A stretch of DNA of 64,000 nucleotides, taken from NCBI RefSeq assembly GCF_006345805.1, contig NC_043009.1, positions 4,278,001 through 4,342,000 on the forward strand, read 5' to 3'. The position numbers and the translations under genes were made by a program. Of this stretch, positions 2,272 through 64,000 are shown one piece after another (the stretch's first letter is position 1; each line of letters begins with the position of its first letter). Source of the stretch: Octopus sinensis (lineage: Eukaryota). The notes under the pieces are model-generated. The model was not told the origin of the DNA. It saw only the letters and a program-made list of their open reading frames with translations, and did no database searches.

Positions 2272-2426
2272 TTGGGTTGTCCGGAAAGTTCGTGCCGATT
2301 TTTAAAGGAAAGAAAAAAGGTCAATAAATACTTGCCATTACATCTTTAATCAACCAAATATGAATCCTTTGGTTGTTAAGTGCGTCTCCATCTTTCTTTT
2401 AACTTGAAAATACCCTCTTCCCAGAA
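2272..2426 (-). mobile_element. Mariner transposon 3' end (transposase C-terminus plus TIR)
   Basis: Minus strand reads FWEEGIFKLKERWRR..SYLVD*, the typical mariner transposase C-terminus. The end TA|TTGGGTTGTCCGGAAAGTT resembles a mariner TIR with its TA target. Confidence 0.8.
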
Positions 2427-2820
2427 TTGATGTGGTTTCATGGCAATCAATTCATCAATATATATAGAAAGCTACACCAATGCCAGAAGGTCCCAGCAAT
2501 GCCATCACGCTTCAGGACCAGTTATTGCAACAGCCTGGGTTTCAAGGGTCCACAGCTTTTTTATATTCTCCCAAAGAGCCTGAGGAACTTGCACAAAGTA
2601 GATGTAGGGGTTTTTTAATCAAAGCTGGACCTCTTCCTGTCAAGAGTTCCTGTCAAGAGTCCCAGATGAACCTACCTCACGGCAAGAGGTGCAAATGAGG
2701 GTAGCTATATCAAACTCCATGCTTCACCAAGTGCCACATATTAGAGGAGTCGATTAGTAATAACCGTGTAGCAAAACGGCGGTGCATCAGCATGGCCACA
2801 GCTCTGAGCTGAAACTAGAG
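2427..2820 (+). mobile_element. CR1/L2-group LINE, 3' end of ORF2 plus 3' UTR/tail
   Basis: Translation gives NSLGFKGPQLFYILPKSLRNL..VF*SKLDLFL..VP(shift)DEP..SNSMLHQ. This matches the NSL-x-x-RGP-x-LFN-x-LP..LRN..KLD-x-FL..VPDEP C-terminal motif of this LINE group. The in-frame stop and frameshift mark it as dead. The tail is at 2775-2820. Confidence 0.75.
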
Positions 2821-4779: not shown

Positions 4780-6038
4780 CAGAGAGAGTGAGACAGAGAG
4801 AGAGAGAGTGAGTGAGTGAGACAGAGAGAGAGAGAGTGATTGATTCCAGAATCTAAACTCGAAAGATATTTCTAGGCCTTGTGCCAGATGTTCACCTTGT
4901 GTGATTTGTCACAAACTCTCTATAACTTATTCCAGTCTTCCCTTCTGTACCTAGGGCTGGTACCACTGGTTTCATTACATATAATGCTATCTAACTTCTT
5001 TCTAGCTCCCCTGTATACCCGAACCCTATCTTTCTGACCTTATCCAGAGAATTGCATGGGGTTCGCATAGTGGGGACGTGTTGTTCATTATCCTAAGTCT
5101 TCTATCGGTATGTTGATTTGTGTAGCAAAATTGAGTTCTTGCGAACAACATATTTCGATGCTATGGGTTTCATGTAATAGGAGCGGAGTGGAGGAGCTAC
5201 ACTCTGTTGTTCACAGCCTCTAAAACACACACACACACACACACGCACACTCACACACACACACACACACACACACACAACACACACACACACATACATA
5301 TGTATATATACATATATGTGTGTGTGTATATATATATGTGTATATATACGTTTATATATTTGTTTTGCAAGATTCTTGATGTGAAATCGTGTGTTGAAAC
5401 AGATGTTGTTGCATTTAGGAATGGTCATTTTGCCAGTTTAGCCAAATAAAACACACACATATATATATGTATATATATATATGTGTGTGTATGTATATAT
5501 ATATATATACATATATATATGTATGTACAAAGTAAGATAGAGGTTATGAAGGTAACCCACTATGGGGTAATATCCGTAAGTTGATGATCGAAATAAATTT
5601 GTTCCTCCATTTTCTTATTTATATATGTATGTATATATGTGTATATATATATATATGCATGTGTGTTTGTGTGTGTGTGTGTGTGTATGTGTGTGTGTAT
5701 TGGCATGCAAATCTTGGGATCATTATATTTGATTATGTTTTTATACTGTATAATATGAGAGAGATTTGTCTAGTATTTCTAGCATGCTGGTTTGCCATAT
5801 AGAAATTTCGTTCTTGAAACTTGACTATCCCTACCATAGTGTGACGAGGTCAAAGCATACTCGGCTGGCTTTCAAACTCAATACTTCCAAGATAGAAGCA
5901 AATCGTTCAGTCGCGAATATTGTGTCGTAGATACTAAAAAATGCTTAGCATATATCCTATTATATAACAGTCTTGTAAATAATCATATCATATTTCTAAC
6001 CATTTTGTATGTATATATGTATGATACATGTATTTATG

Positions 6039-6117
6039 TCTTTTTTTCTTTCTTTTTGCAGGTAAGTACGCAGAAGCATTTCTGTCATCTTATTGCCAAA
6101 ATTAAAATCAGGTAGGC
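6039..6117 (+). promoter_or_regulatory. Fused 3'/5' splice site (candidate recursive splice site) with downstream alternative donor
   Basis: Unbroken pyrimidine run 6039-6057, then GCAG (AG at 6060-6061), immediately followed by GTAAGT (6062-6067). A second donor, CAG|GTAGGC, starts at 6112. Confidence 0.55.
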
Positions 6118-7025
6118 TGATTTCTAACGTTTGAAATAACAGGAACAAAATAGCAGTGTTATTATTGTATATGTGTATGTGTGTCTATGTGCGTAGAAAG
6201 CAATAAAAAAAAGCCAGCTTTGGCCTGTTTGATTCGATAGTTCTGTATCACTGCCCTTGTGTTTGTAATGCTTCCGTACTCCCAAAGAATCTTATGAACT
6301 GTCGCATGCAAATTAACCAGAAATCCTCTTTAGAGTTTAAGGAGGATGATCCCGACAAAACTCTTATTTAAAGATCAGAACGAAATTGTTAACACACACA
6401 CACACGCATATATACACACACACAATCTTTGTATCAGAGTATTCAAGAAGAATTGTAGAAAAAAAAGTTGTGTCACATTTTTAAGATTTACATTTATAAA
6501 TTTATTATTGCTATTTATTATAAATATTTATGTTATACTTGTTCTCTATAGCTGTTACGCTAACACTATACATTTCAATATTACATACATTATAGCATGT
6601 TAAACATCATCACTACATAATATTGCATTATTAATAGCCGGCGAAATGGCCGAAACTTTAGAATGATAGGTAGAAGGCATCATTACTCGCAGCGATCTCG
6701 CTTAAATTCCAGCCATGGCTATCTTTGCCTTTCATCATTTGCTCTAATGATGACAACGTACTAGTCATGGGTGGTTGATTTTCAAAACAAGATGCTATTC
6801 TATATTTGATTCGGCTCTTTGTGTTCTTATTTCAAATCCCGCCAAAGTCGACATATTCGCTTGATACGCCTATAGTTTTAACATCACAATCTTTCAAGTT
6901 CGATGCCTTTAACGGACTCCTTGACACTCACAAACATTTGGCTATGTTTCCACATTGAGTATCACCGACCAATCTTAGCGGCCTTGTAAAGGGTAATTGA
7001 GCCTTGACTTACCTTTTGATCAGAA

Positions 7026-7414
7026 TACTCTTTTACTTGTTTCAGTCATTTGACGGCGGCCATGCTGGAGCACCGCTTTTAGTCGAGCAAATTGAGTCCA
7101 GGACTTATTCTTTGTAAGATTTGTACTTATTCTATCGGTCTCTTTTGTCGAGCCGCTAAGTTACGGCGACATAAACACACAAGCATCGGTTGTCAAGCGA
7201 CGTTGGGGGACAAACACAGACACACAAACATACACACACACACATATATACATATATACGACGGGCTTCTTTCAGTTTTCGTCTGCCAAATCCACTCACA
7301 AGGCTTTGGTCGACCCGAGGCTATAGTAGAAGACACTTGCCCAAGGTGCCAAGCAGTGGGACTGAACCCGGAACCGTGTGGTTGGTAAGACAGCTACTTA
7401 CCACACAGCCACTC
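7026..7414 (-). mobile_element. Family A tRNA-derived SINE, near full length
   Basis: Minus strand shows an A-box-like TGGCTGTGTGG, a B-box-like GGTTCAGTCCC, a CCTTGGGCAAGTGTCTTC segment reminiscent of CORE-type SINEs, an internal (TA/TG)n tract and the GGCGGTGCTCCAGCATGGCC..CTGAAACAAGTAAAAGAG-type tail. Confidence 0.9.
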
Positions 7415-8394
7415 ATTATTGTTATTGTTATTTATTAATATGTCATCTCATTATTCCTATATACTACAGTATTGCAATAAATTGTAATTATATAACTATG
7501 TGTGCGCCTTGCTTCACTATATATTTAGGATATATTATATTTACATATTGATAAATTATATCCATATATCTCTACACACCGGAATACATTATTTATTACA
7601 TGTAAATATAAATCACATTATTAACATATCTTATGTTATTGCATTCAACTTTTTGACTTATTCTTCTCTTGATATTTGAAGGAGCAATATTTCCAAAATG
7701 CCAGAATAAATTTGGAGATTAGTATTTAGATTTGTTTCGTGATATACTTGCTTTTCTTGTCATTATAATAACGATTTATTTAAATCAAGCTCTTGTATAA
7801 TAGATAGTGAAGAAATTTTTTTCAGTTCTCACATCTACGTATTTTTACAATATTTCTTCTTCCTCTTGTTAAATACTGCCTTAATACACTTTTACACAGT
7901 TACTCACACACTCGTTTACCCGAGAATCTGAATTCCATAATTTAAGTTTCGATGATGAATTAAAAATGATTTTTACATCCTTAGCTATCTCTCTATATAA
8001 TAGCCATTTATATTCATTATTTTTCATTAACTGATTCGGCAAACTGCGGTCATGATTTGCAGTATTTGTCCATGATTTTTTAATTGTGAATTTAAATTAT
8101 GGTGAGGCCAATTTCATCAGTGAAAGAGTGATTTCATAAAATATTAGTCAAATACTGGGTTTGATTTAATGAGCTTGAAATTTCCACTGAACAAAAACGT
8201 AATTGCTACTTTGTGACCTTCTACAAATGGTAAAATCATTCACGATCTGACTGTCGAACCGGGCTTCAGTTTTCATTTGACAGATATTTAAAAGTACGCC
8301 ATTTTGGTGTGAAATTTTTCCAAGTATTTAATCATGCTACCTACTATTTCACGATATACGAATTACACACACATACATATACACATACACACAG

Positions 8395-8490: not shown

Positions 8491-8505
<15 letters not shown>

Positions 8506-8668
8506 CGACGGGCTTCTTTCAGTTTCTGTCTACCAAATCCACTCACAAGGCTTTGGTCGGCCCTAGGCTATAGTAGAAGACACTTGCCCAAAGTGCCACG
8601 CAGTGGGACTGAACCTGGAACCATATGGTTCGTAAGCAAGCTACGTACCACACACCCAATCCCACGCC
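8491..8668 (-). mobile_element. Family A SINE, 5' half, with expanded internal microsatellite
   Basis: Matches the head and central part of 7026-7414 and runs into a long (CA)/(TA) tract at about 8360-8500. Confidence 0.85.
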
Positions 8669-12270: not shown

Positions 12271-12482
12271 TATCTTCTACTTGTTTCAGTCGCTGGACTG
12301 CGGCCATGCTGGGATGCCGCCTTCAAATATTCTTGTGCAATGAATCGACCTCCAGTTATTATTATTTTTTACGCTTGCTACTTATTTCATCGATGTCTTA
12401 GGCCGAACCGCGAAATTGTGCGGACGTAAAGAAATAAACAATGGGTTTAAAGCGGTGGGAGGGATAAATGTAAACACAAAGG

Positions 12483-12559
<77 letters not shown>

Positions 12560-18729: not shown

Positions 18730-18935
18730 ACAACAGGCACAAAACCTGAAATATGTGAGCAGGGGGAGGAGTTGGTTACATTGAATCCAATACGCAACTC
18801 GTACTTATTTTATCGACCCTGAAAGGAGGAAAGGCAAAGTTAACCTCGGCGGAATATGAACTCAGAACGTGAAGACGGACGAAATATCGCAAAACATTTC
18901 GCCCCGCGTGCTAATGATTCTGCCAGCTCGCTGCC

Positions 18936-18938
<3 letters not shown>
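18730..18938 (-). mobile_element. Family B tRNA-derived SINE (tail type 1)
   Basis: Minus strand shows head GGCAGCGAGCTGGCAGAATCATTAGCACG, B-box-like GAGTTCATATTCC, core CTTTGCCTTTCCTCCTTTCAGGGTCGATAAAATAAGTAC and a tail ending near GTGCCTG. Confidence 0.85.
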
Positions 18939-18980
<42 letters not shown>

Positions 18981-19378: not shown

Positions 19379-19401
19379 TATCATTATTATTATTATTACA
19401 C

Positions 19402-19585
19402 CGGGCAAAATGCTTAGCGGTGTTTCGTCCGTCTTTACGTTCTGAGTTCAAGTTCCACCGAGGTCGACTTTGCCTTTCATCCTTTTGGGGTCAATAAATT
19501 ATGTACCAGTAAAACACTGGGTCGCTGTAATAGACTAGCCCCCTCCCCCAAATTTCAGGCCTTGTACCTATAGTAGAAAGGATTA
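19402..19585 (+). mobile_element. Family B SINE, 5'-truncated (tail type 1)
   Basis: GTTCTGAGTTCAAG..GAGGTCGACTTTGCCTTTCATCC core, then tail CCCCTCCCCCAAATTTCAGGCCTTGTACCTATAGTAGAAAGG(ATT)n. Confidence 0.85.
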
Positions 19586-24912: not shown

Positions 24913-24942
24913 TATATATATTATGTGTGATAATAATGACAG

Positions 24943-25151
24943 TCCTTTCTCCTCCAGCACAAAGCATCAAACTTGAGGGGAGGAGATTTGTCGATTACAT
25001 CGACCCCGTTGTTTTACTGATATATAATTTATTTATCCCGAAAAGATGAAAAGAAATTTGAAAGAAATTTAAACTCAGAACGTAAGGACGGGTGAAATAC
25101 CGCTAAGCATTTTCCCAGCGTGCTAACGATTCCACGCCGGCTCGCCGCCTT
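24943..25151 (-). mobile_element. Family B SINE, diverged
   Basis: GAAATACCGCTAAGCATTTT..GTGCTAACGATT..CTCGCCGCC head, read on the + strand. Confidence 0.8.
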
Positions 25152-25176
25152 AATAATGATAATAATGATAATAATG

Positions 25177-25213
<37 letters not shown>

Positions 25214-25919: not shown

Positions 25920-26341
25920 TTTTGGGGGAGGGGTTAAGTTGATTACATCGAACCCGGTGTTTTACCGGCACTTAATTTATCGACCCCGAAAGGATGAAAG
26001 GTAAAGTCGACCTCGGCGGAATTTTAATTCAGAACGTAACGGCAGATGAAATACCGCTATGCATTTTGCTAACGATTCTGCCAGTTCACCGCCGTTTCAT
26101 ATATTCTTTTCTACTCTGGGCACAAGGCCCAAAATTTGGGGGTGGGGTATAGTCGATTAGATCGACCCCAGTACGCAACTGGTAATTAATTTATCGATCT
26201 CGAAAGGATGAAAGGCAAAGTCGACCCCGGCGGCATTTGAACTCAGAACGTAAAAGACAGACGAAATACCTATTTCTTTACTACCCACAAGGGGCTAAAC
26301 ACAGAGAGGACAAACAAGGACAAACGGATTAAGTCGATTAT
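25920..26341 (-). mobile_element. Two adjacent family B SINEs, the second joined to a type-2 tail
   Basis: Copies at about 25920-26094 and 26107-26270. The junction GAAATACC|TATTTCTTTACTACCCAC is at 26270/26271. Confidence 0.85.
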
Positions 26342-26389
26342 CATGAAACACATAATAATCCTCTTCCTTCTCCTCTAATTCATCATCAT

Positions 26390-26850
26390 AATCACCACCA
26401 TCAGCACCGCCACCACCGACACCATCGTCTCCTCCATCACCGCCACGACCACAATCGGCCCACCACCACTGCCACCACCACCACCACCATTAGCCTCGCC
26501 ACCACCGTCAACCACTGCAACCACCATCAGCTCCGCCAACACTGTCACCACCGCCATCAGCCCCTCCACTACCGACATGACCACAATCAGCTCCATCCAC
26601 CACCACCATCATCCCCACCACCACCATCAGACCCTCCACCACCGCCACGACCACCATCAGCTCTGCCACCACCGCCACACCCACAATCAGCACCGCCACC
26701 ACCACCATCAGCCCCGCCATCACCAACATCACCACCGACACCACCACCACCATCAGCCCCTCCACTACTGCCAAGACCACCATCAGCTCCACCACTACCG
26801 GCACCACCACAATCAGCTTCGCCACCACTACAACCACCATCATCATCATC
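26390..26850. repeat. CAC-rich minisatellite, ~30-nt unit ACCACCATCAGCYCC(G/T)CCACYACYGCC
   Basis: About 11 degenerate copies of the ACCA(C/A)ATCAG anchor are visible. Confidence 0.75.
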
Positions 26851-27189
26851 ACACTCTTTTATCATCTTCATCACCATTGCTATATTCCTTAAACTCATCA
26901 TCATCGTCAGCGCCATCTATAGAGATATATCATCGCCATTATAACATCCTTCTTGTTGTAAGCATAAACATCCTCCATCAATACCGTCGAGCTTTTCTTC
27001 AGCGACGAGCAACACAAACGCAACGACAACAGCAACCACGTCAATATCACCAACAACAACAACAGCTCGACCATCTCGGAAAAACTGAGGGTACGAATAT
27101 TGATTCGTGATGTTGCTTTTTATAAAAAGAAAATTCGTTGCACCATTAAAAAAACCATCAAAAATAACAGCAACGATGAGAATATTACT

Positions 27190-27382
27190 AATAATTAGGG
27201 ATTCTATAATAATGAAACAAAATAGTAATAATAATAATAATATAATGATGATGATGATGATGATGGTACTAGTAATAATAATAATAATAATGATAATAAC
27301 AACAACAACAATAATAATAATGATGATGATGATGGTAGTAGTAGTAGTAATATTAATAATAACAACAATAATAATAATAACA

Positions 27383-27419
<37 letters not shown>

Positions 27420-27427
27420 TAATGATA

Positions 27428-27459
<32 letters not shown>

Positions 27460-27550
27460 GGTAATAATGATAATAATAGTAATAATAATAATAACAATAA
27501 TAATGATGATGATGATGATGAAGAAGAAGATAATTATTATTATTACTAAT
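27190..27550. repeat. (AAT)/(GAT)/(AGT) compound trinucleotide tract
   Basis: Direct reading. Confidence 0.9.
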
Positions 27551-28333: not shown

Positions 28334-28742
28334 TTTTACTCTTTTACTTGTTTCAGTCATTTGACTGCGGCCATGCTGGAGCACCGCTTTTTAGTCGAGC
28401 AAATCGAACCCAGGACTTATGCTTTGTAAGCCTAGCACCTATTCTATCGGTCTCCTTTGTCGAACCGCTAGGGAACGGGGATGTAAGTAAATACACCAGC
28501 ATCGGTTGTTAAGCGATGTTTGGGGGACAAACACAGACACAAACACACACATACACACACATACACACACATATCATATATACGACAGGATTCTTTCTGT
28601 TTCCGTCTACCAAATCGACTCACAAAGCTTTGTTCGGCCCGAGGCTATAGTAGAAGACACTTACCCAAGTAGAAGTCACGCATTGTGACTGAACCCGGAA
28701 CCATGTGGCTGGCAAGCAAGCTACTTACCACACAGTCACTCC
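28334..28742 (-). mobile_element. Family A SINE, near full length
   Basis: Colinear with 48108-48492 from tail to head. Confidence 0.9.
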
Positions 28743-30754
28743 AGGTAGACATTCCGATATTTTATTCATATTTTATTTGGCTACGGATGAAATATAAATG
28801 GAATGAAAAATGGTTGTATTGTGGTGATTCGTTATGGAATCTCGTATGTATTTCTCAAAATTAAGGCTTTAGAATCTTACGAAGGGAGATAACTGCAGGA
28901 TGAGGGGTACGTCAAGAAGAAAAGGAAATTGTTCAAAGTATGTAAGGTAAATTGTAACAGAGAGAGTATAAGCCGAAACTGTGATGAACTTTGGCCGCCT
29001 GAGCATATATTTGTGCTTGTTTGCATACTACCTTCTTTTCCGTATTGCTTCGTCTTCCTGAGTCCCCTTTTCCATGATATGAGTGTGTTGAATGAGCACA
29101 TTATGTACATATACAGATATGTAGCAACATATGTATACATTTTATTGTGTCGTAGCGTTACACAGGAACTTAGATATTACAGCATACGTTATCGTATTAT
29201 CTCGTGTTTGAACCTACGTGTTCATTTGAAGTGAAGATTCAGGCAAGGGAGGTCACATTAACATCTTTGTATGACCAGCAATAATAACTCCTGTATCAGA
29301 AATATCAAGAAATTAATATCAATAATGAGATAAATCGTGCCAATGAGAGATACTGTATGCGTTTTGCTCTCTACTACAATTATTCGTCAAATCGTACCCT
29401 ACTATCTTAAATAAGTAACACTAATTGGCCCAGCCTTGCAAAGACAAAATATGTCCAAAAACGAATTGGCAGTTATGTATAATTGGACAGCATGCCAAAC
29501 TTGGATAAGGTAGTTAAGTGGAGGTCGTGTGTGTACTAAAATCTACATATGATAAAGACCAAGCTAAGGTTATCTAGGACACACCTGTCCAAACATGCAA
29601 CGAGATCAAGTTGATCATGGAATGTAATGAGAACCTATGTTCTCTGACACACAACTTGAGAATTTCTGACTATAATGTCGGACAAAATGTATGTAAGTCT
29701 CAGCAAAAATACAAAACCCTTGAAATGATATTAAATAGGATGTCGGGTATGAAAAGGAAAAAATAAATGCTTAAAGTAATTGGGTGAGTACTAAGTATAA
29801 ATACAAACATTAAGAATAACACAGAAACCATACCAATTCGACGTTGTCCTCAGCCAAAAATGAAAAAGAAGTCTTATATGGCACAACCCACATCCTGTGC
29901 TAAACACTATCAATTCAATAGTCTTATACGCAATACATTGTGGACAACACAATACATTATCGCCACACGTTCATAATACACGACCAGCGTAGCACACACT
30001 GTGCACAATTATCGCCCAATAAAAACAAAGTCACATATCGTAGACTACGTTTTCTGTCTACATCAACAATAAAGTAACGCCAGGAACGACAAGAATTACA
30101 CTGTGTGTGTGTGTGTGTGTTTGTTTGTTTCTCATAGTAATGGTAGCTAGTCGTTGTGGGTCTCCGTCGTTTCACGAAGAGAGCTCGGTGCTTTGGCCAA
30201 CAGAACAATCGGCTCCTGAATACACGTGTTGAGATTTCCTTTCACAAATGTACACTTAACGCGAGACTCCGACAGAATCATAACAGCTCTAAACAGCTTA
30301 CGCCTACCCAAGTTCGCTCACAATGTACCAATCAGCCCGAGGCTATTGGAAACACACACACACATGCACAGAAACACACAAACATACATACTTATGTATA
30401 TATATATATATATATATATATAGCATAGCATAGCAGCTGTAATATACAGATAGTATATTAAAGACAATACTGTAAACCCCTCAGTAACGCAGCTGTGTAC
30501 TTTATTGAATTTCGCATGAGGTTGTTGAAAACGTAATAGCAATACAACTGGCAGAAACTTCGGAGCGTCGAAAAAAATACTTTGCATTCTTTGTTGTGGA
30601 GCTTTGGGGTCAAATCTCACCATGGTCGACTTTTAGCTTTGCAGAGTAAATAATACATAAAATACTAGCTAAATACTGGGGTCGATTCATCGCCTTTTCC
30701 CCATCACAAATTTTGAGTTTTTACGCTTTTGACAGAAACATTACTTGAGTTATT

Positions 30755-31101
30755 CTTTTCGGCTTTAGGCACAAGGCTCGACATTTTTGGAGAGGGAGTC
30801 AATCGATTAGATTGACCAAAGTGCGTAACTGGTACTTAATTTATCAAACCCGAAAGGATGAAAGGCGAAGTCGACATCAGCGGAATTTGAACTCAGACCG
30901 TAAAGACGGACGAAATACCTATTTCTTAACTACCCACTAGGGGCTAGACTCAGAGGAGACAAACAAGGACAGATAGACGGATTAAGTCTATTATATCGAC
31001 CCCAGTGCGTAACTGGTACTTAATTTATCGACCCCGAAAGGATGAAAGGCAAAGTCGACCTCGGCGGAATATGAACTCACAACGTAACAGCGGACGAAAT
31101 A
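30755..31101 (-). mobile_element. Family B SINE dimer (type-2-tailed unit plus type-1-tailed unit)
   Basis: Two cores with the junction GAAATACC|TATTTCTTAACTACCCAC at 30919/30920. Confidence 0.85.
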
Positions 31102-31459
31102 TGACTGTGACTAAAGACTTAACACTTAGACTAACGAAAAACGAAGGAAATACAATGACAAAAAATATATACATAATTAGAAGAAGAAACAAAAAGCATT
31201 TATAAGACCAACAAAAAGGAAAAGATCGCCACTACCACAAACACCGCCATTATCATCGCTACCGCCAATAGCTTGCGACAGCGACTTCTTTGCACAACAA
31301 CAGCAACTATTGACAGCGGCATGGAGAAGCTTAAACTTAACATGGCTTCAACTGGATATATTTATGGCCAGGGGCTATAGTGTGGCCTAATTAGGGAAAG
31401 ACAGATTGAATAAGGAAACAGTTAAGATGCTGTGAACGCTCGGTGACGCGGATTATAGT

Positions 31460-32045
31460 GGTGAGGTCGGTGGTGGTGGTCGTGGTGGTCTTATAAGAAC
31501 TGAGGCGGTGGGGACTGCAGTGGTAAAAATTGATGGTAGAGGTGAAAATGGAGATGGTTGTTGTTGCGGTAGTTATTGTTGTTGTGATTGTGTTGGGGGG
31601 GGGGGGAGACATGGCGATTGAGTCGGTGGGGTGGCGGAGGGGCTTTGTCAACGATGCAGTTGTGGTGGTGGTGTGTGGTGGTGTGTGGTGGTGTGTGGTG
31701 ATTGTGGTGGAGTGCCATTGGTGACTGGCTGTCAATGGCCTCCAGAGAAAGACATCGAACAAGTAAAAGGGTTTATAACTAAAGATGTTGCGAATGCATT
31801 CGTGGAAGGTGGTAGAGTCACCAAAAGGAACGGCAGGACATGGTGCTCTCGATGATAGCGGCGGCGGCGGCGGTGGTGGTGGTGGTAGTGGTGGTGGTGT
31901 TGCTGTTGGTGGTGTTGCTGTTGGTGGTGTTGGTGGTGGTGGTGTTGGTGGTGGTGGTGATGGTGGTGGTGGTGCTGATGGTGGTGTTGGTGGTGGTGGT
32001 GGTGGTGATGGTTGTGGTGGTGGGGGTGGGGGGTGGGGGTGGCTT
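31460..32045. repeat. Degenerate (GGT)n tract
   Basis: Direct reading; source of the poly-P/G/T/V ORFs. Confidence 0.9.
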
Positions 32046-33093
32046 TGGTACAATGTCTTGGTGCCTGTGAGGACCACTAGGGTGGGCTGAGAGTAACAGA
32101 ATAGCAGTAAGTAACAGTAGGTAGGTCGGGGCTATATAAGAGGATAACAATGGTTACAGCGGTGTTATAGTGTTGATGGTGTTGATGGTGGTGGTGGTGG
32201 TGGTAGCAGCAGCGGCAGTAGCTGTGGTAGTAGTAGTCTGCGTGTGTCCTGTGGACTTGGTGCTAATAAGTTGGTGCCTTTAAGGACCACCACTAAAGTT
32301 TGGGCTGACAGCATAGAGATAACGGTAAAGGAGAATGAAAACGGGGTAGGGGGAGAAGTGGAGGATGGTGGTAGTGTTAGGGGTGAGGGTGTTTTTACTG
32401 TAGATAGTGATGGTGGTGGCGGGTGGGAGGGTAGTTTGGTGGTGCGTGGATGTGGGTCGGTGATGGGTGGCGGTGCTTAGTAGATAGTCATTGAGGTGAT
32501 AGTTGTACTGACAGAGAATTGAATTTATTGTCAAATATTTTCGTGTTGGTCACGTGGTTCTTATTGGTGGCGCTGCCGCTGTTTGTCACTATCGACGCGG
32601 TCGATGATAACGATGTTGTTGTTAGCGGGGATGCTGGTTGTGGTATGAGGAGTAATTGTGTACAGAGGTGGGGGTTGTAGTAGCAGTATTGAGAGGAGCT
32701 TATACCTAAGGTTTCGTGTTGATGCAGACGATGACTACAACGATGAAGGTGTTGGTGGTGGTGGTGGTGGTGGTGGTGGTGGTCATGGTGAGAAGGATTT
32801 TAATGGTGGTAAAAGAGATTGTATTTGCACGATGGTGACGGTCGTAGCAGTGTTTTGAGTAGGGATTGTTTTTAAGGTTTCCTGTTGATAAAGAAGCTGA
32901 TGATGATAGATCGGTAGATAGATAGACAGAGAGCGAGAGAGAGAGAGAGAGAGAGAGATAAAGAAAGAGAGAGAGAGAGAGAGAGAGAAAATAGAGATAG
33001 ATAGATAGACAGATATATATATATACATAGGAAAATAGATAGATAGAAGTAATGCAGGAGAGGTAATCTATTGTGTTTTTACTTTTAATACTA

Positions 33094-33142
<49 letters not shown>

Positions 33143-33249
33143 ACACACACGCACGCGCGCGCACACTTAAGACGACTGTTTGTGTTGAGAAAGAGCAGAT
33201 TCCCTGTAGAGCATGCAGAACAGAACCGCCTTTACATACACTTTGTACG

Positions 33250-33284
<35 letters not shown>

Positions 33285-34199
33285 TCTCACTTCCACCACC
33301 ATACATACCACAACCACCTACCACCACCACCACCACCACACCACCGACGCTGACTGCCAAACTCTTCATGAGATATAACCGCAAGAACCACTTCTGTATT
33401 CTTAAACGACAACACTAACCCATAATTACATCCTCTTTCACGCACCCACGCACCCACGTATCCACCCAACTACTTTTGTATTTTCTAGTCTTCGTCCTTT
33501 TCTTTCTTTCTTTCTTTCTTTTTTTCTTCCTCCTTTTGTCCATTCCTTCCAGTTGAATAATCCATTCCACACTCGTCTACACTACAAACTCTTGATATTC
33601 CACACAGCCTTACACACACACAACCACACACACACATATACACACATATACACACACATATGCACTCATACGCGCACGCGCCAAGTAGCACCCTGCTACT
33701 CTCTTTATCTATCCATCTGTATATATTTACATCTACCCATCCATCCATCCATCCATCTATTGTTTCATCTATCAATGCATTCAACGCCCCCATCCATTCA
33801 TTTGCTGATCCACTCGTCGATCCGCTAAACCACCCGTCCATCTATCTGTCCATCCACCCGTCCACGAGTACTTCCACTTGATTTTCTTACCCGACAATAT
33901 GTATGCAACGATTCGTCTATTGTATTAGCCATATAATAAATATTTGTCTATCTAACATGCATAGGTAGATATCTATCTTTCTACCTTACATTTTTTCATC
34001 TCTTTCTTCCTCCCCCCTCTCTCTCTCCCCTCACTCTCTCTCTCTCTTTTCCTCTTCGTTTGCGTAAATATATTTATATATATATACATACATACTTGCA
34101 TACACACACACACACATATAATAACGAAATTTTACAAAATGTATAAATGGATGATGAGTAAAGCACAGTTTCGGTTACCTGTTCTTATCCGTGGATTTA

Positions 34200-34679: not shown

Positions 34680-34908
34680 TATTTCTTTACTACCCACAAG
34701 GGCCTAAACACAGAGAGGACAAACACGGATAGACAAACGGATTAAGTCGATTATATCGACCCCAGTGCGTAACTAGTTATTTAATCGACCCCGAAATGAT
34801 TAAAGCAAAGTCGACCTCAGCGGAATTTGAACTCAGAACGTAGCGGCAGACGAAATACTGCTAAGCATTTCGCCCGGCGTGCTAACGTTTCTGACAGCTC
34901 GCCGCCCT
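34680..34908 (-). mobile_element. Family B SINE monomer with type-2 tail and 16-bp TSD
   Basis: Full head to tail. TGCAATCGAGACGTCC is duplicated at 34664-34679 and 34909-34924. Confidence 0.95.
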
Positions 34909-39066: not shown

Positions 39067-39197
39067 TTTCTACTCTAGACACAATTCCGGAAATTTGTGG
39101 GGAGGATCCAATCGATTAGATCGCCCCCAGTACGCAACTGGTACTTAATTTATCGACCCCGAAAAGATGGAAGGCAAAGTCGACCTGAGCGAAATTT
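39067..39197 (-). mobile_element. Family B SINE, 3' part
   Basis: CAGTACGCAACTGGTACTTAATTTATCGACCCCGAAAAGATGGAAGGCAAAGTCGACC core on the + strand. Confidence 0.8.
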
Positions 39198-45381: not shown

Positions 45382-45981
45382 TTTTTATTATAGGCACAAG
45401 GCCTGAGATTTGAGGGGAGGGGACTAGTCGATTACATCGACCCCAGTCTTTCACTGGTACTTAATTTATCGACACCGTAAGGCTGCATGGCAATGTCGAT
45501 CTCGGCGTAAATGGAACTCAGAACGTAGCGATGGGCGAAATACCGCTAAACATTCCGTCCGGGGTGCTAACGATTCTTATTTCTTTATTGCCCACAAGGG
45601 GCTAAACACAGAGGGGACAAACAAGGACAGACAACGGGGTTAAGTCGATTACATCGATCCCAGTGCGTAACTGGTACTTAATTTATCGACCCCGAAATGA
45701 TGAATGGCAAAGTCAACCTCGGCGGAATTTGAACTCAGAACGTAGCCGCAGATGAAATACCTATTTCTTTACTACCCACAAGGGACTAAACACAGAGGGG
45801 ACAAACACGGACAGACAAACGGATTAAGTCGATTAGATCGACCCCAGTGCGTAACTGGTACTTAATTTATCGACCCCGAAAGGATGGCAGGCAAAGTCGA
45901 CCTCGGCGGAATTTGAACTCAGAACGTAACGGCAGACGAAATACCGCTAAGCATTTCGCCCGGCGTGCTAACGATTCTGCC
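45382..45981 (-). mobile_element. Family B SINE trimer
   Basis: Three cores (two type-2 tails, one type-1 tail) with junctions at 45575/45576 and 45761/45762. Confidence 0.9.
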
Positions 45982-47032
45982 TGTAAAATTGTGATAATGC
46001 GCACACATTGACAAAAACACCAACAGCTAGCAACTAGACGTGTTCACACAGAACGTAAGCGCACACGTACACTTAGAAGTATGCACATTCTGAGTCAACC
46101 ACATATTTACAAACCCCGCGAACTGTCTTAAGTCTAAAAGTCTTGTCACTTTGTTATCGACCGGCTTGAACTTTATGGGAGAAGAATTTAAATCTCAAAG
46201 AAACCATATAGATATACTCATATTCAGACACACGCACACATACACTGATATACCGATAGAGAACCACACATACATAAGCTCATAATGAATAATCGTTCAT
46301 TAAAAATATGTTGTAGAGCGATAGTGAGAGTTTGAGGAATTTAAAATGAATGAGATAAATACATAAATTATTTTAGAACATTATAAGAAGACGCAGAATA
46401 ATAAGCAAAATATAGAAAGAAAAAAAAACACACGAAAATAAATAAATAATGAATGGGAGAAATAATGAAAGAAAGGAATGGAGGAGGGAATGATGGAAAT
46501 GAGACGAAAGAGAGATTATAAAATCTTATTTTTCAGCAGTTTTCATTTGAGCGGATTAAAAGATATGTTGTTAATGTTGCAAATTTGATGTGAAAGATAA
46601 GTAGCTAATCCGAAGGGGTTGCGGAGGTCAGTAGGACAAGGTCATCCTACAAACATCAGACCCCTTCTCTGCATTTTTCACAGTACCCTTGGAAAATGAA
46701 CCCCACCACCACCACCACCACCACCACCACTTCCAAAATAAAAAAGAAAAGAAAAAGGAAATCCCTCCCGCCATATTGTGTCTGTCAAATGATGAAAATG
46801 TGTGATGGGGGAAGATGGGTAGAGAGAGACTAATAGGATTTTTCCCCTATGGACAATTTATTTATTTTTTTATTTTAAATATATATAATAATCTTCAAAT
46901 CTACAGATACAGTGCCAAGCAGTATTCACCTACAGCTCTCCGTGATTTGAGTTCAAATCCTGCCGACGATGACAACTTCCACTTTACTTCCTTAAGGATC
47001 GATAAAGTACGAGTTCAATTCTCATTCTTTTT

Positions 47033-47215
47033 AAGGCGACGAGCTGGCAGAATCGTTCCTCTGCCGATCAAAATACTCAGCAGCATTTTGTCCGTGCTTA
47101 TTTTCTGAGTTCAAAATCTGCTTAGGTCAACTTTGCCTTTCGTCTTTTCGAGGTCGATAAAATAAGTACCAATTGAGTATTTGAGCTGATGTAATCAACT
47201 TAGATTTTCCTCCGA
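47033..47215 (+). mobile_element. Family B SINE, diverged
   Basis: GGCGACGAGCTGGCAGAATCGTT head and GGTCAACTTTGCCTTTCGTC core. Confidence 0.75.
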
Positions 47216-47500: not shown

Positions 47501-47879
47501 AGCTTGCTTAACAACCACATGGTCCGGGTTCCAGTCCATTGCGTGGCACCTTGGGCAAGTTGTCTTCTACCATATCCTTAGGCCAAACCAAAAGCCTTGC
47601 GAGTGGATTGGTAGACGGAAACTCAAAGAAGCCCGTCGTATATATGTATATATATATATATGTGTTTGTGTGTCTGTGTTTGTCCTCCTAGCATTGCTTG
47701 ACAACCGATGCTGGTGTGTTTACGTCCCCGTAACTTAGCGGTTCGGCAAAACAGACCGATAGAATAAGTACTGGGCTTACAAAGAATAAGTCCCGGGGTC
47801 GATTTGCTCGACTAAAGGCGGTGCTCCAGCATGGCCGTAGTCAAATGACTGAAACAAGTAAAAGAGTAAAAGAGTAAAA
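47501..47879 (+). mobile_element. Family A SINE, lacking only the extreme 5' head
   Basis: Colinear with the other family A copies; ends in GTAAAAGA repeats. Confidence 0.9.
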
Positions 47880-48107
47880 TATATAATGCGGTGGTGCCAT
47901 CCACGAAATTTATGTCATATGGTGTTGAGTGCAACATAAGTAACTCGTACCAAATGTGATGAATTTCAAGTTCTTTACTTTGTCTAGTCGTGAAGAGCAG
48001 CTTTTGTATCACGAGTGTTAAGTGTTAAGTTGCATGAAGCTAAATTAAACTGTTATAAATTCATCTATTTATCCATTGCTACTCAAGGAGATTGCATTCT
48101 GATTTTA

Positions 48108-48492
48108 CTCTTTTACTTGTTTCAGTCATTTGACTGCGGCCATACTGGAGCACCGCCTTTAGTCGAGTAAATCGACCCCGGGACTTATTCTTTTTGTAAG
48201 CCCAGTAGTTATTCTATCGGTTTCTTTTGCCGAACCGCTAAGTGACGGGGACGTAAACACACCAGCAATGTCAAGCAATGCTAGGGGGGACAAACACAGA
48301 CACACAAACATATACACACACACTTATATATATATATACATATATACGACAGGCTTCTTTTCAGTTTCCGTCTACCAAATCCACTCACAAGGCATTGGTC
48401 AGCCCGGGGCTATAGCAGAAGACACTTGCCCAAGATGCCACGCAGTGGGACTGAACCCGGAACCATGCGGTTGGTTACCACACAGCCACTCC
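48108..48492 (-). mobile_element. Family A SINE, full length, with 15-bp TSD
   Basis: TGCATTCTGATTTTA is duplicated at 48093-48107 and 48493-48507. Confidence 0.95.
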
Positions 48493-49473
48493 TGCATTCT
48501 GATTTTATATTCCGCCAAGGTCCACTTGGCAACTGAGATGCTACCTAGTTGATTGTATAAGGTACTAGTCGAGTTAAATAGCGGACATAAATATCCCAGC
48601 ATTTCAGGCCTTGTGCCTTTATTAGAAACTACGGTTGTTGTTTCAGAAGGTTTTTCTCGTCATTGAAAAAAAGAAAAAGAAAAAAGAAAAAGAAACAAAC
48701 AAAAATCCACTCCAATCGATGTTTAAAATCTGAAACCCCTTGAGAAGTGAAAGGATAAAAAAAAAGAAAGGAAAGAAGAAAGCTGGAAGCAAGGGTTTGA
48801 TAGAAGGGAGAGGAGAAGGAAGGATAACATGAGATGGGCGGATTAAGTTCAATGGGTTAGATGAGGACGTATGTTTTTGGTTGACCCAGTCCTGGCTTAA
48901 CATCCCCTTCTTCTCTTCATTTACTATACAGCCTCAATCCTCTTAATGCATTTAACTTACCCACGCACACACACACACACACACGAACATACACAGACAC
49001 ATGTACGTTGAACATGACCTTCACACTGCCGTCTTCGAAGTGACAATAGAGTTTTAGTAATATGCATTTCTTTTTTTCTTTGTTGTTGTATATATTTTAA
49101 GTGCAAGACTTTTACTGACTTTCTTTCTATTTCACGAGCGCGCACACACAACACACACACACACACACACTATTGTAATGCTCTTAAATTTGGATCTGGC
49201 TATAATCCTCAATCATTCAGTAGTATTTGGCTCTGAAGAGCTTCCTTTCTTACACAGTCTAAACATGCGAACACATAACTATGTGTGAGTACGTATTATA
49301 TATATATACATTTGTGGCGGACTTCTTTCAGTTTTCGTCTATCAGATCCCCTCTCAAGGCCATCGTTGGTCCAGGGTTGTAGTAAAGGAAACTTTCCCAA
49401 AGTGCTGCGCAGTGTAACTGAACCCGGAAATGTGGTTGAGGCAAACTTCTTACCACACAGCTTCGTCAGCGCC

Positions 49474-54012: not shown

Positions 54013-54446
54013 TTTTTACTCTTTTACTTATTTCATTCATTTGGCTGCGGCCATGCTGGAGCACCGCCTTTTTATTTTATTTTACTTTATTTTATTTTTT
54101 TAGACGAGCAAATCGATCCCAGGAATTATATTTTTGAAAGCGTAATGCTTATTATATCGGTTTCTTTTGCCGGACAGCTATGTTACGAGGACGTAAATAC
54201 ACCGACACCGGTTATCAAGCGGTGATGGAGGGACAAATACACACACACACACAAACATACACACACACACACACACATACACACATATATATATATATAT
54301 ATATATTCGGCAAGCTTCTTTCAATTTCAAATTCACTCAGAAGGGTTTGGTCAGCCTCAGGCTTTAGTAGAAGACACTTCTCCAAAGTGCCACACATAGG
54401 ACTGAATCCAGAACCATGTGGTTGGGAAGCAAGCTACTTACCACAT
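54013..54446 (-). mobile_element. Family A SINE, diverged
   Basis: Tail, central and head blocks are all recognisable. Confidence 0.8.
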
Positions 54447-56094: not shown

Positions 56095-56345
56095 TAACAG
56101 GAAATTGAAACATCACCATTTGAACTATCTATACCATATTGTAAAAACTATCTGTGAAAAGCTACTACTCCTGTCGTAACTGCTAGAAGAAGAGAGAGCG
56201 TTCTCTGGCTGACCTACGTCATTGACGATCATGGTGCGGTGCCGGCCGTACTTGTAGCAGACAGCTCGTAGGGTTTCTTCTGTAATGGAGACAGACTGAG
56301 CGAATGGTTTGTAAAATACTTCTCTCAGCTTTACATCTTGTTTCA
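56095..56345 (+). mobile_element. Possible decayed RTE-like LINE fragment (EN-RT linker)
   Basis: Mixed-frame peptides LYHIVKTICEK and PAVLVADSS*..LSEWFVKYFSQLY loosely resemble RTE linker motifs (LY-x-I-x-K-x-L; RW-x-EYF-x-QL). Needs a profile search. Confidence 0.3.
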
Positions 56346-56429
56346 GTAATTGGAAAGTGACCATATTTTGGCACCATCTTCAACAGTATAGTCGACCTAA
56401 CTGACCCCAATTTTTCTTTTTTTTATGGC

Positions 56430-56672: not shown

Positions 56673-56923
56673 TGTCCCCTAAGTATAAGGCAGAGTAACT
56701 AAACTGAAAACGATGTGGATACAAAGTGAGATTCTTAAACTCCTCAGTTATGCCTATGTCTATTACAGGAGGGGAAAATCGTGCTATGCTGCTGGAAACG
56801 TTCGATGCTGAGCCGTTGTGCACTGCACCACAAATATAAAGAAGAGAGATAAAAAGGTATTGGCTCATATCCACACATTTATGGAGAAAAGAGGCTTTTG
56901 TTCGGAAAGAAGACACTAGTTGA

Positions 56924-57356
56924 GGCGGTTATCTGGCAGAAACGTTAGCATGCCGGACGAAATGCTTACCGGTATTTCGTCTGCCGTTACGTTCTGAGTT
57001 CAAATTACGCCGAGGTCCACTTTGCCTTTCATCCTTTCAGGGTCGATTAAATAAGTACCAGTTACGCACTGGGGTCGATATAATCGACTTAATCCGTTTG
57101 TCTGTCCTTGTTTGTCCCTTCTGTGTTTAGCCCCTTGTGGGCAATAAAGAAATAAGTATCGTTAGCACGCCGGGCGAAATGTTTAGCGGTATTTCGTCTG
57201 TCTTCATGTTCTGAGTTCAAATTTCTTTGAGGTCAACTTTGCCTTTCATCCTTCCCGAGGACGATAAATTAAGTACCAGTTACGTACTGGGGTCGATCTA
57301 ATCCACTGGCCCTCCCAAAAGAAATTCAGACCTTGTGCTTAGACTAGAAAAAAAAT
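56924..57356 (+). mobile_element. Family B SINE dimer with 12-bp TSD around the whole dimer
   Basis: GACACTAGTTGA occurs at 56912-56923 and 57357-57368. The internal junction AAAGAAATAAG|TATCGTTAGCAC is at 57156/57157. Confidence 0.9.
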
Positions 57357-58529: not shown

Positions 58530-58960
58530 TCATTCCGTTAGTTCAGTTTGAGGATCCATTATGCACAGAGATGCCGGACACTGATAAGTCGGGAATGGAT
58601 TGGACCTTTAACTTTACTTATACATCAGTTTTTTTCCCCTATTCCGAAGCTCACCAGGTTCTCTTGTTCTTTTCATATCGTTTACCTCCTCTAATTAACA
58701 TCAAGGTTTTTGTTCCGGTTACTTTCTGTTTACGTATACACAGATATGTTCCTTTACTTACCTTTGTCAGTTGCATTGAAATGCCCAGACACAGAGGTGG
58801 TAAGTCTCCAAAATTTTCCCATTTCCTGTTTTAGTTCCTTCTCATCTCAGTAATGAAGAAGGACTCTCTCTCCGAATCATCGAACAAATCCTCAGGACAA
58901 TATTATCTTCCAATTTCTGCCGCTCTTTACGCCAAAATGCCAGTTGTCACCGACGAAAAC
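58530..58960 (-). mobile_element. Probable decayed RTE-like LINE endonuclease fragment
   Basis: Mixed-frame minus-strand peptides FVGDN-WHFG, GERVLLHY*DEKEL and RLTTSVSGH occur in the order of the APE motifs GDFN-x-HVG, G-E-R-x-L-x-F-C..L and L-x-TY-x-SG. Confidence 0.4.
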
Positions 58961-61123: not shown

Positions 61124-61625
61124 CACGCGTGCATATTTATATAGCGAAGGGCTTTTCTTTCAGTCCTTTTAGATTGAAGTTACGACTTTGTTCGAGTTTA
61201 ATCTTTCGTATTAAAAAGTTTTCATATTTCATTATTTGTCATTTATGCTTAATTTGAAACAATAACGTTCCATTAACATTTCAAAGCCTTCTCGCCCCAT
61301 TTTTTCTGTATGAATTGAATATAGCAGCATCTTGTCACGTTTTGTAAAATGCGACAAGCGATGTTGGGAATGATGTAGTGCCTGCTAAAATCCTCGTCAC
61401 CAGGTTTAAATACTTTAATTCTTAACTCCTCATTTGTTTCATAGCAATGACTTTTGTCTTGTATTTTGCTATGGCTAACACTTCCATAGTGAATATAGGT
61501 TTTCTATATCGAATGGTTATTTTACGCACATTTTCTGTCTATTTTTGTTTGTTGTGATGGCGCTGAGTAGTAAATTCATAGTTAGTAGACAGTAAAATCT
61601 CGCACTTTACGTGTGTCGTAAGCTT

Positions 61626-61720
61626 AGTACTTATTCTATCGGTCGTTTTTGCCGAACCGCTAAGTTATGGGGGCCATAAATACACCACCATCGGTTGTCA
61701 AGGGAGACAAGCACAGACAC

Positions 61721-61779
<59 letters not shown>

Positions 61780-61908
61780 TACAACAGGATTCTTTCAGTT
61801 TCCGTCTACCAAATCCACTCACAAGGCCTTAGTCAGCCCGAGGCTATAGTAGATGACACTTTCCCAAGGTGCCACGCAGTGTGACTGAACCCGGAACCAT
61901 GTGATTGG
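61626..61908 (-). mobile_element. Family A SINE lacking the 3' tail
   Basis: Central and head blocks are colinear with the other copies. Confidence 0.85.
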
Positions 61909-63506: not shown

Positions 63507-63653
63507 CAGGGGCGGCTGTGTGGTTAGTAGCTTGCTTACCAACCACATGGTTCCGGGTTCAGTCCCACTGTGTGGCAAGTGTCTTCTACTATAGCTCGAC
63601 TAAAGGCGGTGCTTCAGCATGGCCACAGTCAAATGACTGAAACAAGTAAAAGA
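63507..63653 (+). mobile_element. Internally deleted family A SINE (head fused to tail)
   Basis: The intact tRNA-like head joins directly at ACTATAG|CTCGACTAAAGGCGG to the tail. Confidence 0.85.
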
Positions 63654-64000
63654 GGAAAGAGCAGAGTAAAAGAGAGATAATCTTTAAAATGGAGTATATC
63701 AAATACTACAAAACATAAAGTCTTTATTTATCAAAATCATTTCCCCCTCCCCCACCTAAGAGAATGTGCCATAATTACGAAACAGCTAAGATCAGCTTCA
63801 CTTGGGAAGGTCAGATAAACTCATGAGTCAAGAATTGCCAAACATTCACATGCTGTTTTTGTGAAAGAGTAAGCTTGCTGTCCGTCGATGTCGTGGCCAC
63901 GTTATTTCTGGCGAAGTTTTATCTGGTCAACTAACATGAAGTTCCATGCATTATTGGAGATTTGGGCATTGCGTTGTATAAGGATGGGCGTTGGACAGTT

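Follow-up and report, generated by a model that had tools for sequence, protein, structure and literature searches.

The junction at positions 6061|6062 on the + strand of the window (the whole 64,000-nt stretch of Octopus sinensis DNA that was analysed) may be a recursive splice site, or ratchet point, that opens a cryptic RS-exon in a long + strand octopus intron. From the DNA sequence, we put the probability of this reading at about 0.45; the crudeness of our scoring matrices and a possible repeat ancestry of the site, which the null models do not capture, argue against a higher value. What was observed directly is the architecture of the sequence, how rare it is statistically, and how strong it is compared with real octopus splice sites. 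A single motif at this site is a lead, not a discovery.

Architecture of the candidate site

The acceptor GCAG (6058–6061, + strand) scored 15.7 bits and is directly abutted by GTAAGT (6062–6067), which sets the acceptor/donor junction at 6061|6062. Upstream of the acceptor lies an uninterrupted 19-nt pyrimidine tract, TCTTTTTTTCTTTCTTTTT (6039–6057, +). The AG-exclusion zone (5971–6059, +) extends 91 nt upstream of the acceptor. Inside this zone, we located a branch-point-like TTCTAAC (5994–6000, +) whose branch A, at 5999, precedes the acceptor AG by 62 nt; this distance is long, yet within the range of AG-free zones of real octopus acceptors (27–164 nt). TTCTAAC alone is weak evidence, as CTAAC occurred 46 times on the + strand and 37 times on the − strand of the window. 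An alternative, weak branch-like yTnAy element (TTTAT, 6033–6037, +) has its A (6036) closer to the AG, at a distance of 25 nt. The first splicing step is predicted to join the upstream exon to 6062. The predicted regenerated (recursive) 5′ splice site, CAG|GTAAGT (6059–6067, +), is fully complementary to the 5′ end of U1. The fused motif by which recursive splice sites are recognized, published as (Y)nNCAG|GTAAGT (PMC2773006), is thus present in the sequence.

The candidate RS-exon spans 6062–6111 (+), and its 50 nt are not divisible by 3. Frame 0 was open (VSTQKHFCHLIAKIKI), and frames 1 and 2 contained stops. The unit is closed by the competing downstream donor CAG|GTAGGC (6109–6117, +), with GT at 6112–6113 and a score of 10.4 bits. 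When the window sequence was re-read, all coordinates that the sequence-only reading had assigned to these elements proved exact to the base. Its description of the unit as frame-shifting holds for the length, which is out of frame, but the property matters only for a cassette exon; as a constitutive exon, a 50-nt unit would be nothing unusual.

Two further features were observed around the unit. The 9-mer ATTTCTAAC, which contains TTCTAAC, is present twice, 128 nt apart (5992–6000 and 6120–6128), with one copy upstream of the acceptor and the other 8 nt downstream of the second donor. Moreover, the pyrimidine tract might base-pair with an A-rich run 140 nt further downstream through a weak inverted repeat (6037–6056 / 6197–6216; 20 nt with 75% complementarity), in which case the 50-nt unit would be looped out.

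A degenerate TG/TA microsatellite (6005–6039) directly adjoins the pyrimidine tract, so the tract may be low-complexity by origin. This proximity speaks for a chance or unused motif, in which CAGGTAAGT and, 50 nt further on, a donor-like GT came by accident to lie downstream of a T-rich tract beside a microsatellite, with the + strand silent or the site ignored by the spliceosome. We consider such an origin rather unlikely, although it carries a substantial share of the probability, and the results that bear on it are given below.

Strength and rarity of the fused site

Splice sites were scored with position-weight matrices for 3′ and 5′ splice sites, which were built from approximate metazoan frequencies and were untrained on octopus. 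The fused site scored 24.4 bits vs 13.3 bits for the runner-up among the 270 AGGT tetranucleotides on both strands of the window. A lead of 11 bits over all other AGGT sites in the window argues against chance. Its acceptor half (15.7 bits) ranked first among 6,566 AG dinucleotides on both strands, only four of which reached at least 14 bits. The sequence AGGTAAGT was found three times in the window, at 6060 (+), 58763 (−), and 7014 (−). Of the three, the copy at 6060 alone follows a pyrimidine tract, with 19 pyrimidines in 20 positions vs 10 and 8 for the other two.

In the 128 kb formed by both strands of the window, CAGGTAAGT at 6059–6067 was the sole 9/9 match to the U1-complementary consensus. 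Such a unique match would also suit a U1-binding site that suppresses premature polyadenylation and takes no part in splicing. That role by itself leaves unexplained why the top-ranked fused acceptor lies at the same place.

Several estimates of chance occurrence were obtained. Dinucleotide shuffles gave an expectation of 0.02 for Y12NCAGGTAAGT with up to two mismatches, and one perfect match was observed. Fused scores of at least 24 bits appeared in none of 500 order-1 and none of 500 order-3 Markov windows. The order-5 Markov expectation was 0.01; this model overfits, as it partly memorizes the site, and its value is therefore an upper bound. Multiplying the frequencies of strong acceptors by those of GTRAGT or GTAAGT, under independence, yielded 0.001–0.0024 fused sites per 64-kb window. 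Overall, the chance expectation for such a fused site was about 0.0004–0.01 per window, from null models that are blind to low-copy repeats inheriting such a motif by descent. Moderate scorers were not in excess elsewhere in the window, where one fused site of at least 14 bits was observed vs 0.8–2 expected. The fused site is a single outlier and not part of a trend.

On the scale of the genome, these numbers also favour chance. A 2.7-Gb genome comprises about 42,000 windows, and 0.0004–0.01 sites in each adds up to between tens and hundreds of accidental fused sites. In size, the octopus genome resembles those of vertebrates, in which unused motifs of this kind are many, with a sense/antisense ratio of ~1–1.5 (PMC2773006). 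The same report gives a sense-strand enrichment of recursive motifs in vertebrates of 1.0–1.5-fold and a background density of ~0.07–0.12 motifs per 100 kb at a permissive threshold (PMC2773006).

Comparison with real octopus splice sites

The reference for real splice sites was the LMBRD1 locus of Octopus bimaculoides (L001; chromosome CM046608.1, 44.7 kb, introns of at most 9.4 kb). Its exons were mapped exactly, which gave 13 introns with canonical splice sites, and the calibration of the matrices is limited to just these 13. Octopus uses canonical splice signals; GTAAGT was the commonest donor (5 of the 13 canonical ones), and GTGAGT was found in three. Scores of the real acceptors ranged from −0.7 to 14.2 bits around a median of roughly 12, and all 13 lay below the candidate acceptor (15.7 bits), which counts against an accidental motif. 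Among the real octopus donors, GTAGGT and GTAGGA come close to the second donor of the candidate, GTAGGC.

The best non-exonic fused site in the LMBRD1 locus scored 17.4 bits and is antisense to the gene. The presence of such a site in an unrelated octopus intron shows what chance can yield and counts in favour of an accidental origin, whereas the 7 bits by which the candidate exceeds it count against.

The AG-exclusion zone was considered as added evidence and rejected. AG-free stretches of at least 91 nt precede 2.6% of the AG dinucleotides in the window, where the background median is 10 nt; the zones of the real LMBRD1 acceptors have a median of 57 nt within the range given above. Five of 22 strong decoy acceptors also reach 91 nt, so the zone was given no weight; it is uninformative once the pyrimidine tract is given.

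We must also note that the annotated LMBRD1 protein includes a SINE-derived exon of 273 nt (L001 23068–23126 / 24924–25196). The junction into it lacks GT...AG: GAG|GTCAGC stands on the donor side, where the frame does not match, and TT|AGT at the acceptor. This exon is probably an annotation artefact or a case of non-canonical exonization.

The downstream donor and the RS-exon unit

A donor lies tens of nucleotides downstream of the fused site; the unit that it closes is out of frame, and the donor is weaker than the regenerated one, which is the arrangement expected of an RS-exon. The regenerated donor is predicted to score 11.8–12.8 bits where the upstream exon ends in AAG or CAG, vs 10.4 bits for the downstream donor. 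From a random position in the window, a donor of equal or better bit score (10.4) was found at +25 to +120 nt with P = 0.011; by a cruder criterion of at least 7/9 consensus matches, P = 0.053. With moderate thresholds and units of 25–300 nt, only two exon-like acceptor/donor pairs were present on both strands of the window, and the sum of scores was 26.0 for 6062–6111 vs 20.2 for 58771–58799.

The second pair (58771–58799, +) consists of the acceptor TTCCTTTACTTACCTTTGTCAG (10.5 bits), a 29-nt body, and the donor GTG|GTAAGT (9.7 bits). In reverse complement, the − strand copy of AGGTAAGT at 58763 overlaps the acceptor tract of this pair.

The probabilities of the fused site and of the donor are roughly independent, and their product puts the whole configuration at ~1e-5 to 5e-5 per window. 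By chance, it would be met ~0.5–2 times per 2.7-Gb genome, or up to ~20 times with the upper-bound estimate. That the extra downstream donor is improbable (P = 0.011–0.053) and the full configuration arises only about once per genome weighs against an unused motif. If octopus has even some tens of recursive sites, a site this good with a matching downstream donor is probably genuine rather than accidental; with essentially no such sites in octopus, the likeliest explanations are chance and an ordinary exon starting with GTAAGT.

An ordinary expressed exon of this kind could be constitutive, alternative, a poison exon, or part of a non-coding RNA. Here, 6062–6111 would be kept in mature RNA, perhaps shielded from re-splicing like the annotated RS-exons of mammals. 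A real short exon has just such traits, namely a strong acceptor, an extended AG-free zone, and a good donor at a distance of 50 nt, and frame 0 is open. Real exons far outnumber recursive sites, and mammals may have more than 6,400 expressed RS-exons (PMC8605326; PMC6224609). On the other hand, a 9/9 U1 site at the 5′ end of the exon would tend to remove it, as this site outscores the downstream donor for common exon endings. We roughly estimate that ~5e-4 of exons start with GTAAGT. Taken with the absence of coding signals described below, an expressed exon appears improbable, although not negligibly so.

Genomic context of the site

Coding sequence was sought across the whole window. Among ORF lists and stop-free segments in six frames, all ORFs longer than 90 residues were translated simple repeats, and the composition-based coding score was high only in low-complexity repeats. 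Searches of 222 non-repetitive stop-free segments (15.6k residues) gave no accepted Pfam match. An 84-residue open segment at 56128–56379 (−) resembled DUF5733 with E = 4e-4 and 20.8 bits, vs a cutoff of 27; this match was judged spurious, since an exhaustive search returned three weak repetitive proteins without coherent domains. Two chimeric homology searches, one of them a comparison of ORF segments with 5.8 billion proteins, found no match. Rfam families and tRNAs were absent from the window. No orthologous sequence was retrieved by exact ORF look-ups, by the comparison of ORF segments with the 5.8 billion proteins, or by an exact 26-mer search in metagenome contigs.

For an expressed exon, these results are unfavourable, as the open frames that surround the unit had no match in 5.8 billion proteins or Pfam and a neighbouring coding exon was not detected; the 16-residue peptide of the unit itself is below the detection limit. 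The lack of a detected coding exon across 64 kb is compatible with a very long intron, and the window could equally be intergenic.

The transcribed strand was approached through several proxies, and none had a usable asymmetry. GTRAGT was found 31 times on the + strand vs 45 times on the − strand, and AATAAA 74 vs 93 times. Pyrimidine runs and the observed/expected CpG ratio were uninformative on the transcribed strand. SINE orientation was equally uninformative, as the SINE in the LMBRD1 locus lies 7 times sense and 8 times antisense relative to annotated genes. Clustering of GCATG (Rbfox-like) near the site was not significant, as 3.9% of 700-nt windows do as well. That neither a transcribed strand, a host gene, nor an orthologous sequence emerged from these analyses favours an unused motif.

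The window is rich in microsatellites and SINEs. We found about ten copies of a SINE of ~400 bp with an internal CA microsatellite, eight on the + strand and two on the − strand (6990–7460, 8493–8661, 12273–12508, 28337–28741, 47501–47868, 48106–48491, 49302–49461, 54017–54445, 61618–61908, and 63514–63654). The family is abundant in the LMBRD1 locus at 70–92% identity, and peptides encoded by the window copies match three Octopus bimaculoides proteins at 64–85% identity. The SINE carries acceptor-like TTGTTTCAG and GTAAGT motifs and thereby raises the background of splice-like signals. A second repeat family, also abundant in the LMBRD1 locus, has about a dozen copies, interspersed or tandemly duplicated in units of ~180 nt and mostly on the − strand (18770–18939, 19398–19536, 24990–25132, 25931–26341, 30795–31101, 34680–34906, 39104–39197, 45426–45981, 47031–47202, and 56880–57307). 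Two top decoy acceptors, at 18819 (−) and 57040 (+), are supplied by this family. The homology of both families places the DNA in Octopus or a close relative, in agreement with its source.

Other parts of the window also have a distinct composition. The GC-richer blocks at 26300–27550 and 30000–34000 (0.39–0.44 GC) are built from trinucleotide and low-complexity repeats whose different frames encode poly-Gly/Asp, poly-Pro, poly-His, or poly-Ile; the blocks have no CpG-island signature. At 2403–2695 (+), two overlapping open frames (…SLGFKGPQLFYILPKSLRNL…) recall the C-terminal tail of a LINE ORF2; this is an impression only, and these frames had no Pfam or homology match.

The sequence-only reading had placed the site in non-repeat DNA. 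Neither the window nor the 44.7-kb LMBRD1 locus yielded another copy of the core (6058–6117), so the term holds to the extent of these 109 kb; the microsatellite adjoins the tract on its upstream side. A repeat-borne element was nevertheless considered, in which the pyrimidine tract would derive, in reverse complement, from the A-rich tail of a − strand retroposon of a low-copy family. On the − strand, ...ACTTACCTGC leads into an A-rich run and then the microsatellite, an order that resembles a retroposon tail, and the window is saturated with SINEs and the second repeat family. The core, single-copy within these 109 kb, argues against this origin, as does the finding that neither a target-site duplication nor flanking direct repeats are present around the site; a nearby ORF or Pfam signal is also absent. 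Together with the U1-binding role described above, a repeat-borne or non-splicing element has a very low probability.

Proposed mechanism

Each prediction of the sequence-only reading that the sequence itself can check was borne out, and its central proposal was that the window lies within a very long + strand intron excised in steps. We infer transcription of the region, its strand, the intron context, and every step of splicing that follows. For a recursive splice site at 6061|6062, the 50-nt unit (6062–6111) would be recognized by exon definition, through a very strong 3′ splice site (branch point, 19-nt tract, and CAG) and the donor at 6112. The upstream exon would then be joined to 6062, and the first segment of the intron would leave as a lariat. 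This junction would recreate a near-perfect donor, xAG|GTAAGTA, which is predicted to beat the weaker CAG|GTAGGC. If the regenerated donor wins, the 50-nt unit goes with the rest of the intron and is absent from the mRNA. If the downstream donor were used instead, the 50 nt would be included, the frame would be shifted, and the transcript would probably be degraded. In flies and vertebrates, skipping of cryptic RS-exons is favoured where the regenerated donor is stronger than the downstream one (PMC8605326).

In coleoid cephalopods, a large nervous system goes together with a genome that is vertebrate-sized and rich in repeats. To our knowledge, the accurate processing of giant introns in these animals is unexplored. 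At somewhat less than even odds, the features described here suggest that recursive splicing via exon-defined cryptic RS-exons operates in the giant introns of cephalopods, and that the candidate is the first such site identified in a mollusc or in any lophotrochozoan. Recursive splicing is probably old in bilaterians. If the candidate is true, it would argue that the bilaterian ancestor already had the mechanism, along with competition between donors at a short RS-exon that is out of frame, and that insects and vertebrates did not acquire it separately. Validation would extend recursive splicing to Lophotrochozoa and provide a concrete locus for functional tests.

Comparison with known recursive splice sites

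Experiments have documented recursive splicing in Drosophila and vertebrates; for a few other insects and for sea urchin, the evidence is motif enrichment (PMC2773006). As the sequence-only reading had stated, it appears not to have been described in cephalopods; our literature search found no report of it there, where co-mention of the terms was incidental, and likewise found none in molluscs. Known recursive sites lie on the sense strand of long introns, which are the longest few percent in flies and belong to long genes in vertebrates. In flies, they are present in 63–70% of introns longer than 40 kb (PMC6110457). The cryptic RS-exons of flies are ~50 nt long, generally out of frame, and followed by a weaker downstream donor (PMC8605326). 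For humans, only nine fully suppressed recursive sites have been definitively noted (PMC8605326; PMC6110456).

The closest likeness is to the Drosophila ratchet points, described in Ubx, kuz, and Bx by Hatton 1998, Burnette 2005, Duff 2015, and Joseph 2018, whose work is summarized in PMC8605326 and PMC6110457. The candidate shares with them the juxtaposed (Y)nNCAG|GTAAGT and a ~50-nt out-of-frame cryptic exon that ends at a weaker donor. In the candidate, too, the recursive donor is predicted to win, and coding exons were undetected around the candidate, so a very long intron is possible. It differs in that the host is a mollusc and in that the candidate is known from its sequence, whereas the fly sites are defined also by intron context, sense orientation, splicing intermediates, and deep conservation of the SA|SD core.

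The candidate also resembles the RS-exon sites in long neuronal genes of vertebrates (Sibley 2015, cited in PMC8605326; PMC6110456), in its exon-definition layout, the competing downstream donor, and frame-shifting upon inclusion. The octopus genome, moreover, is large and repeat-rich, as in vertebrates. With the annotated RS-exons that the exon junction complex represses from re-splicing (Blazquez 2018, PMC6224609), it has in common an exon-like unit that starts with a functional-looking 5′ splice site. Those exons are retained in mRNA and are mostly constitutive, whereas the recursive donor of the candidate is predicted to be stronger than the downstream one. Pseudoexons or poison exons in long introns, such as the DMD pseudoexons (PMC7175933), are similarly short, out-of-frame, intron-embedded units with good splice sites, but usually have no perfect donor fused to their own acceptor. 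If real, the candidate would thus be an RS site of a familiar kind in a new phylum.
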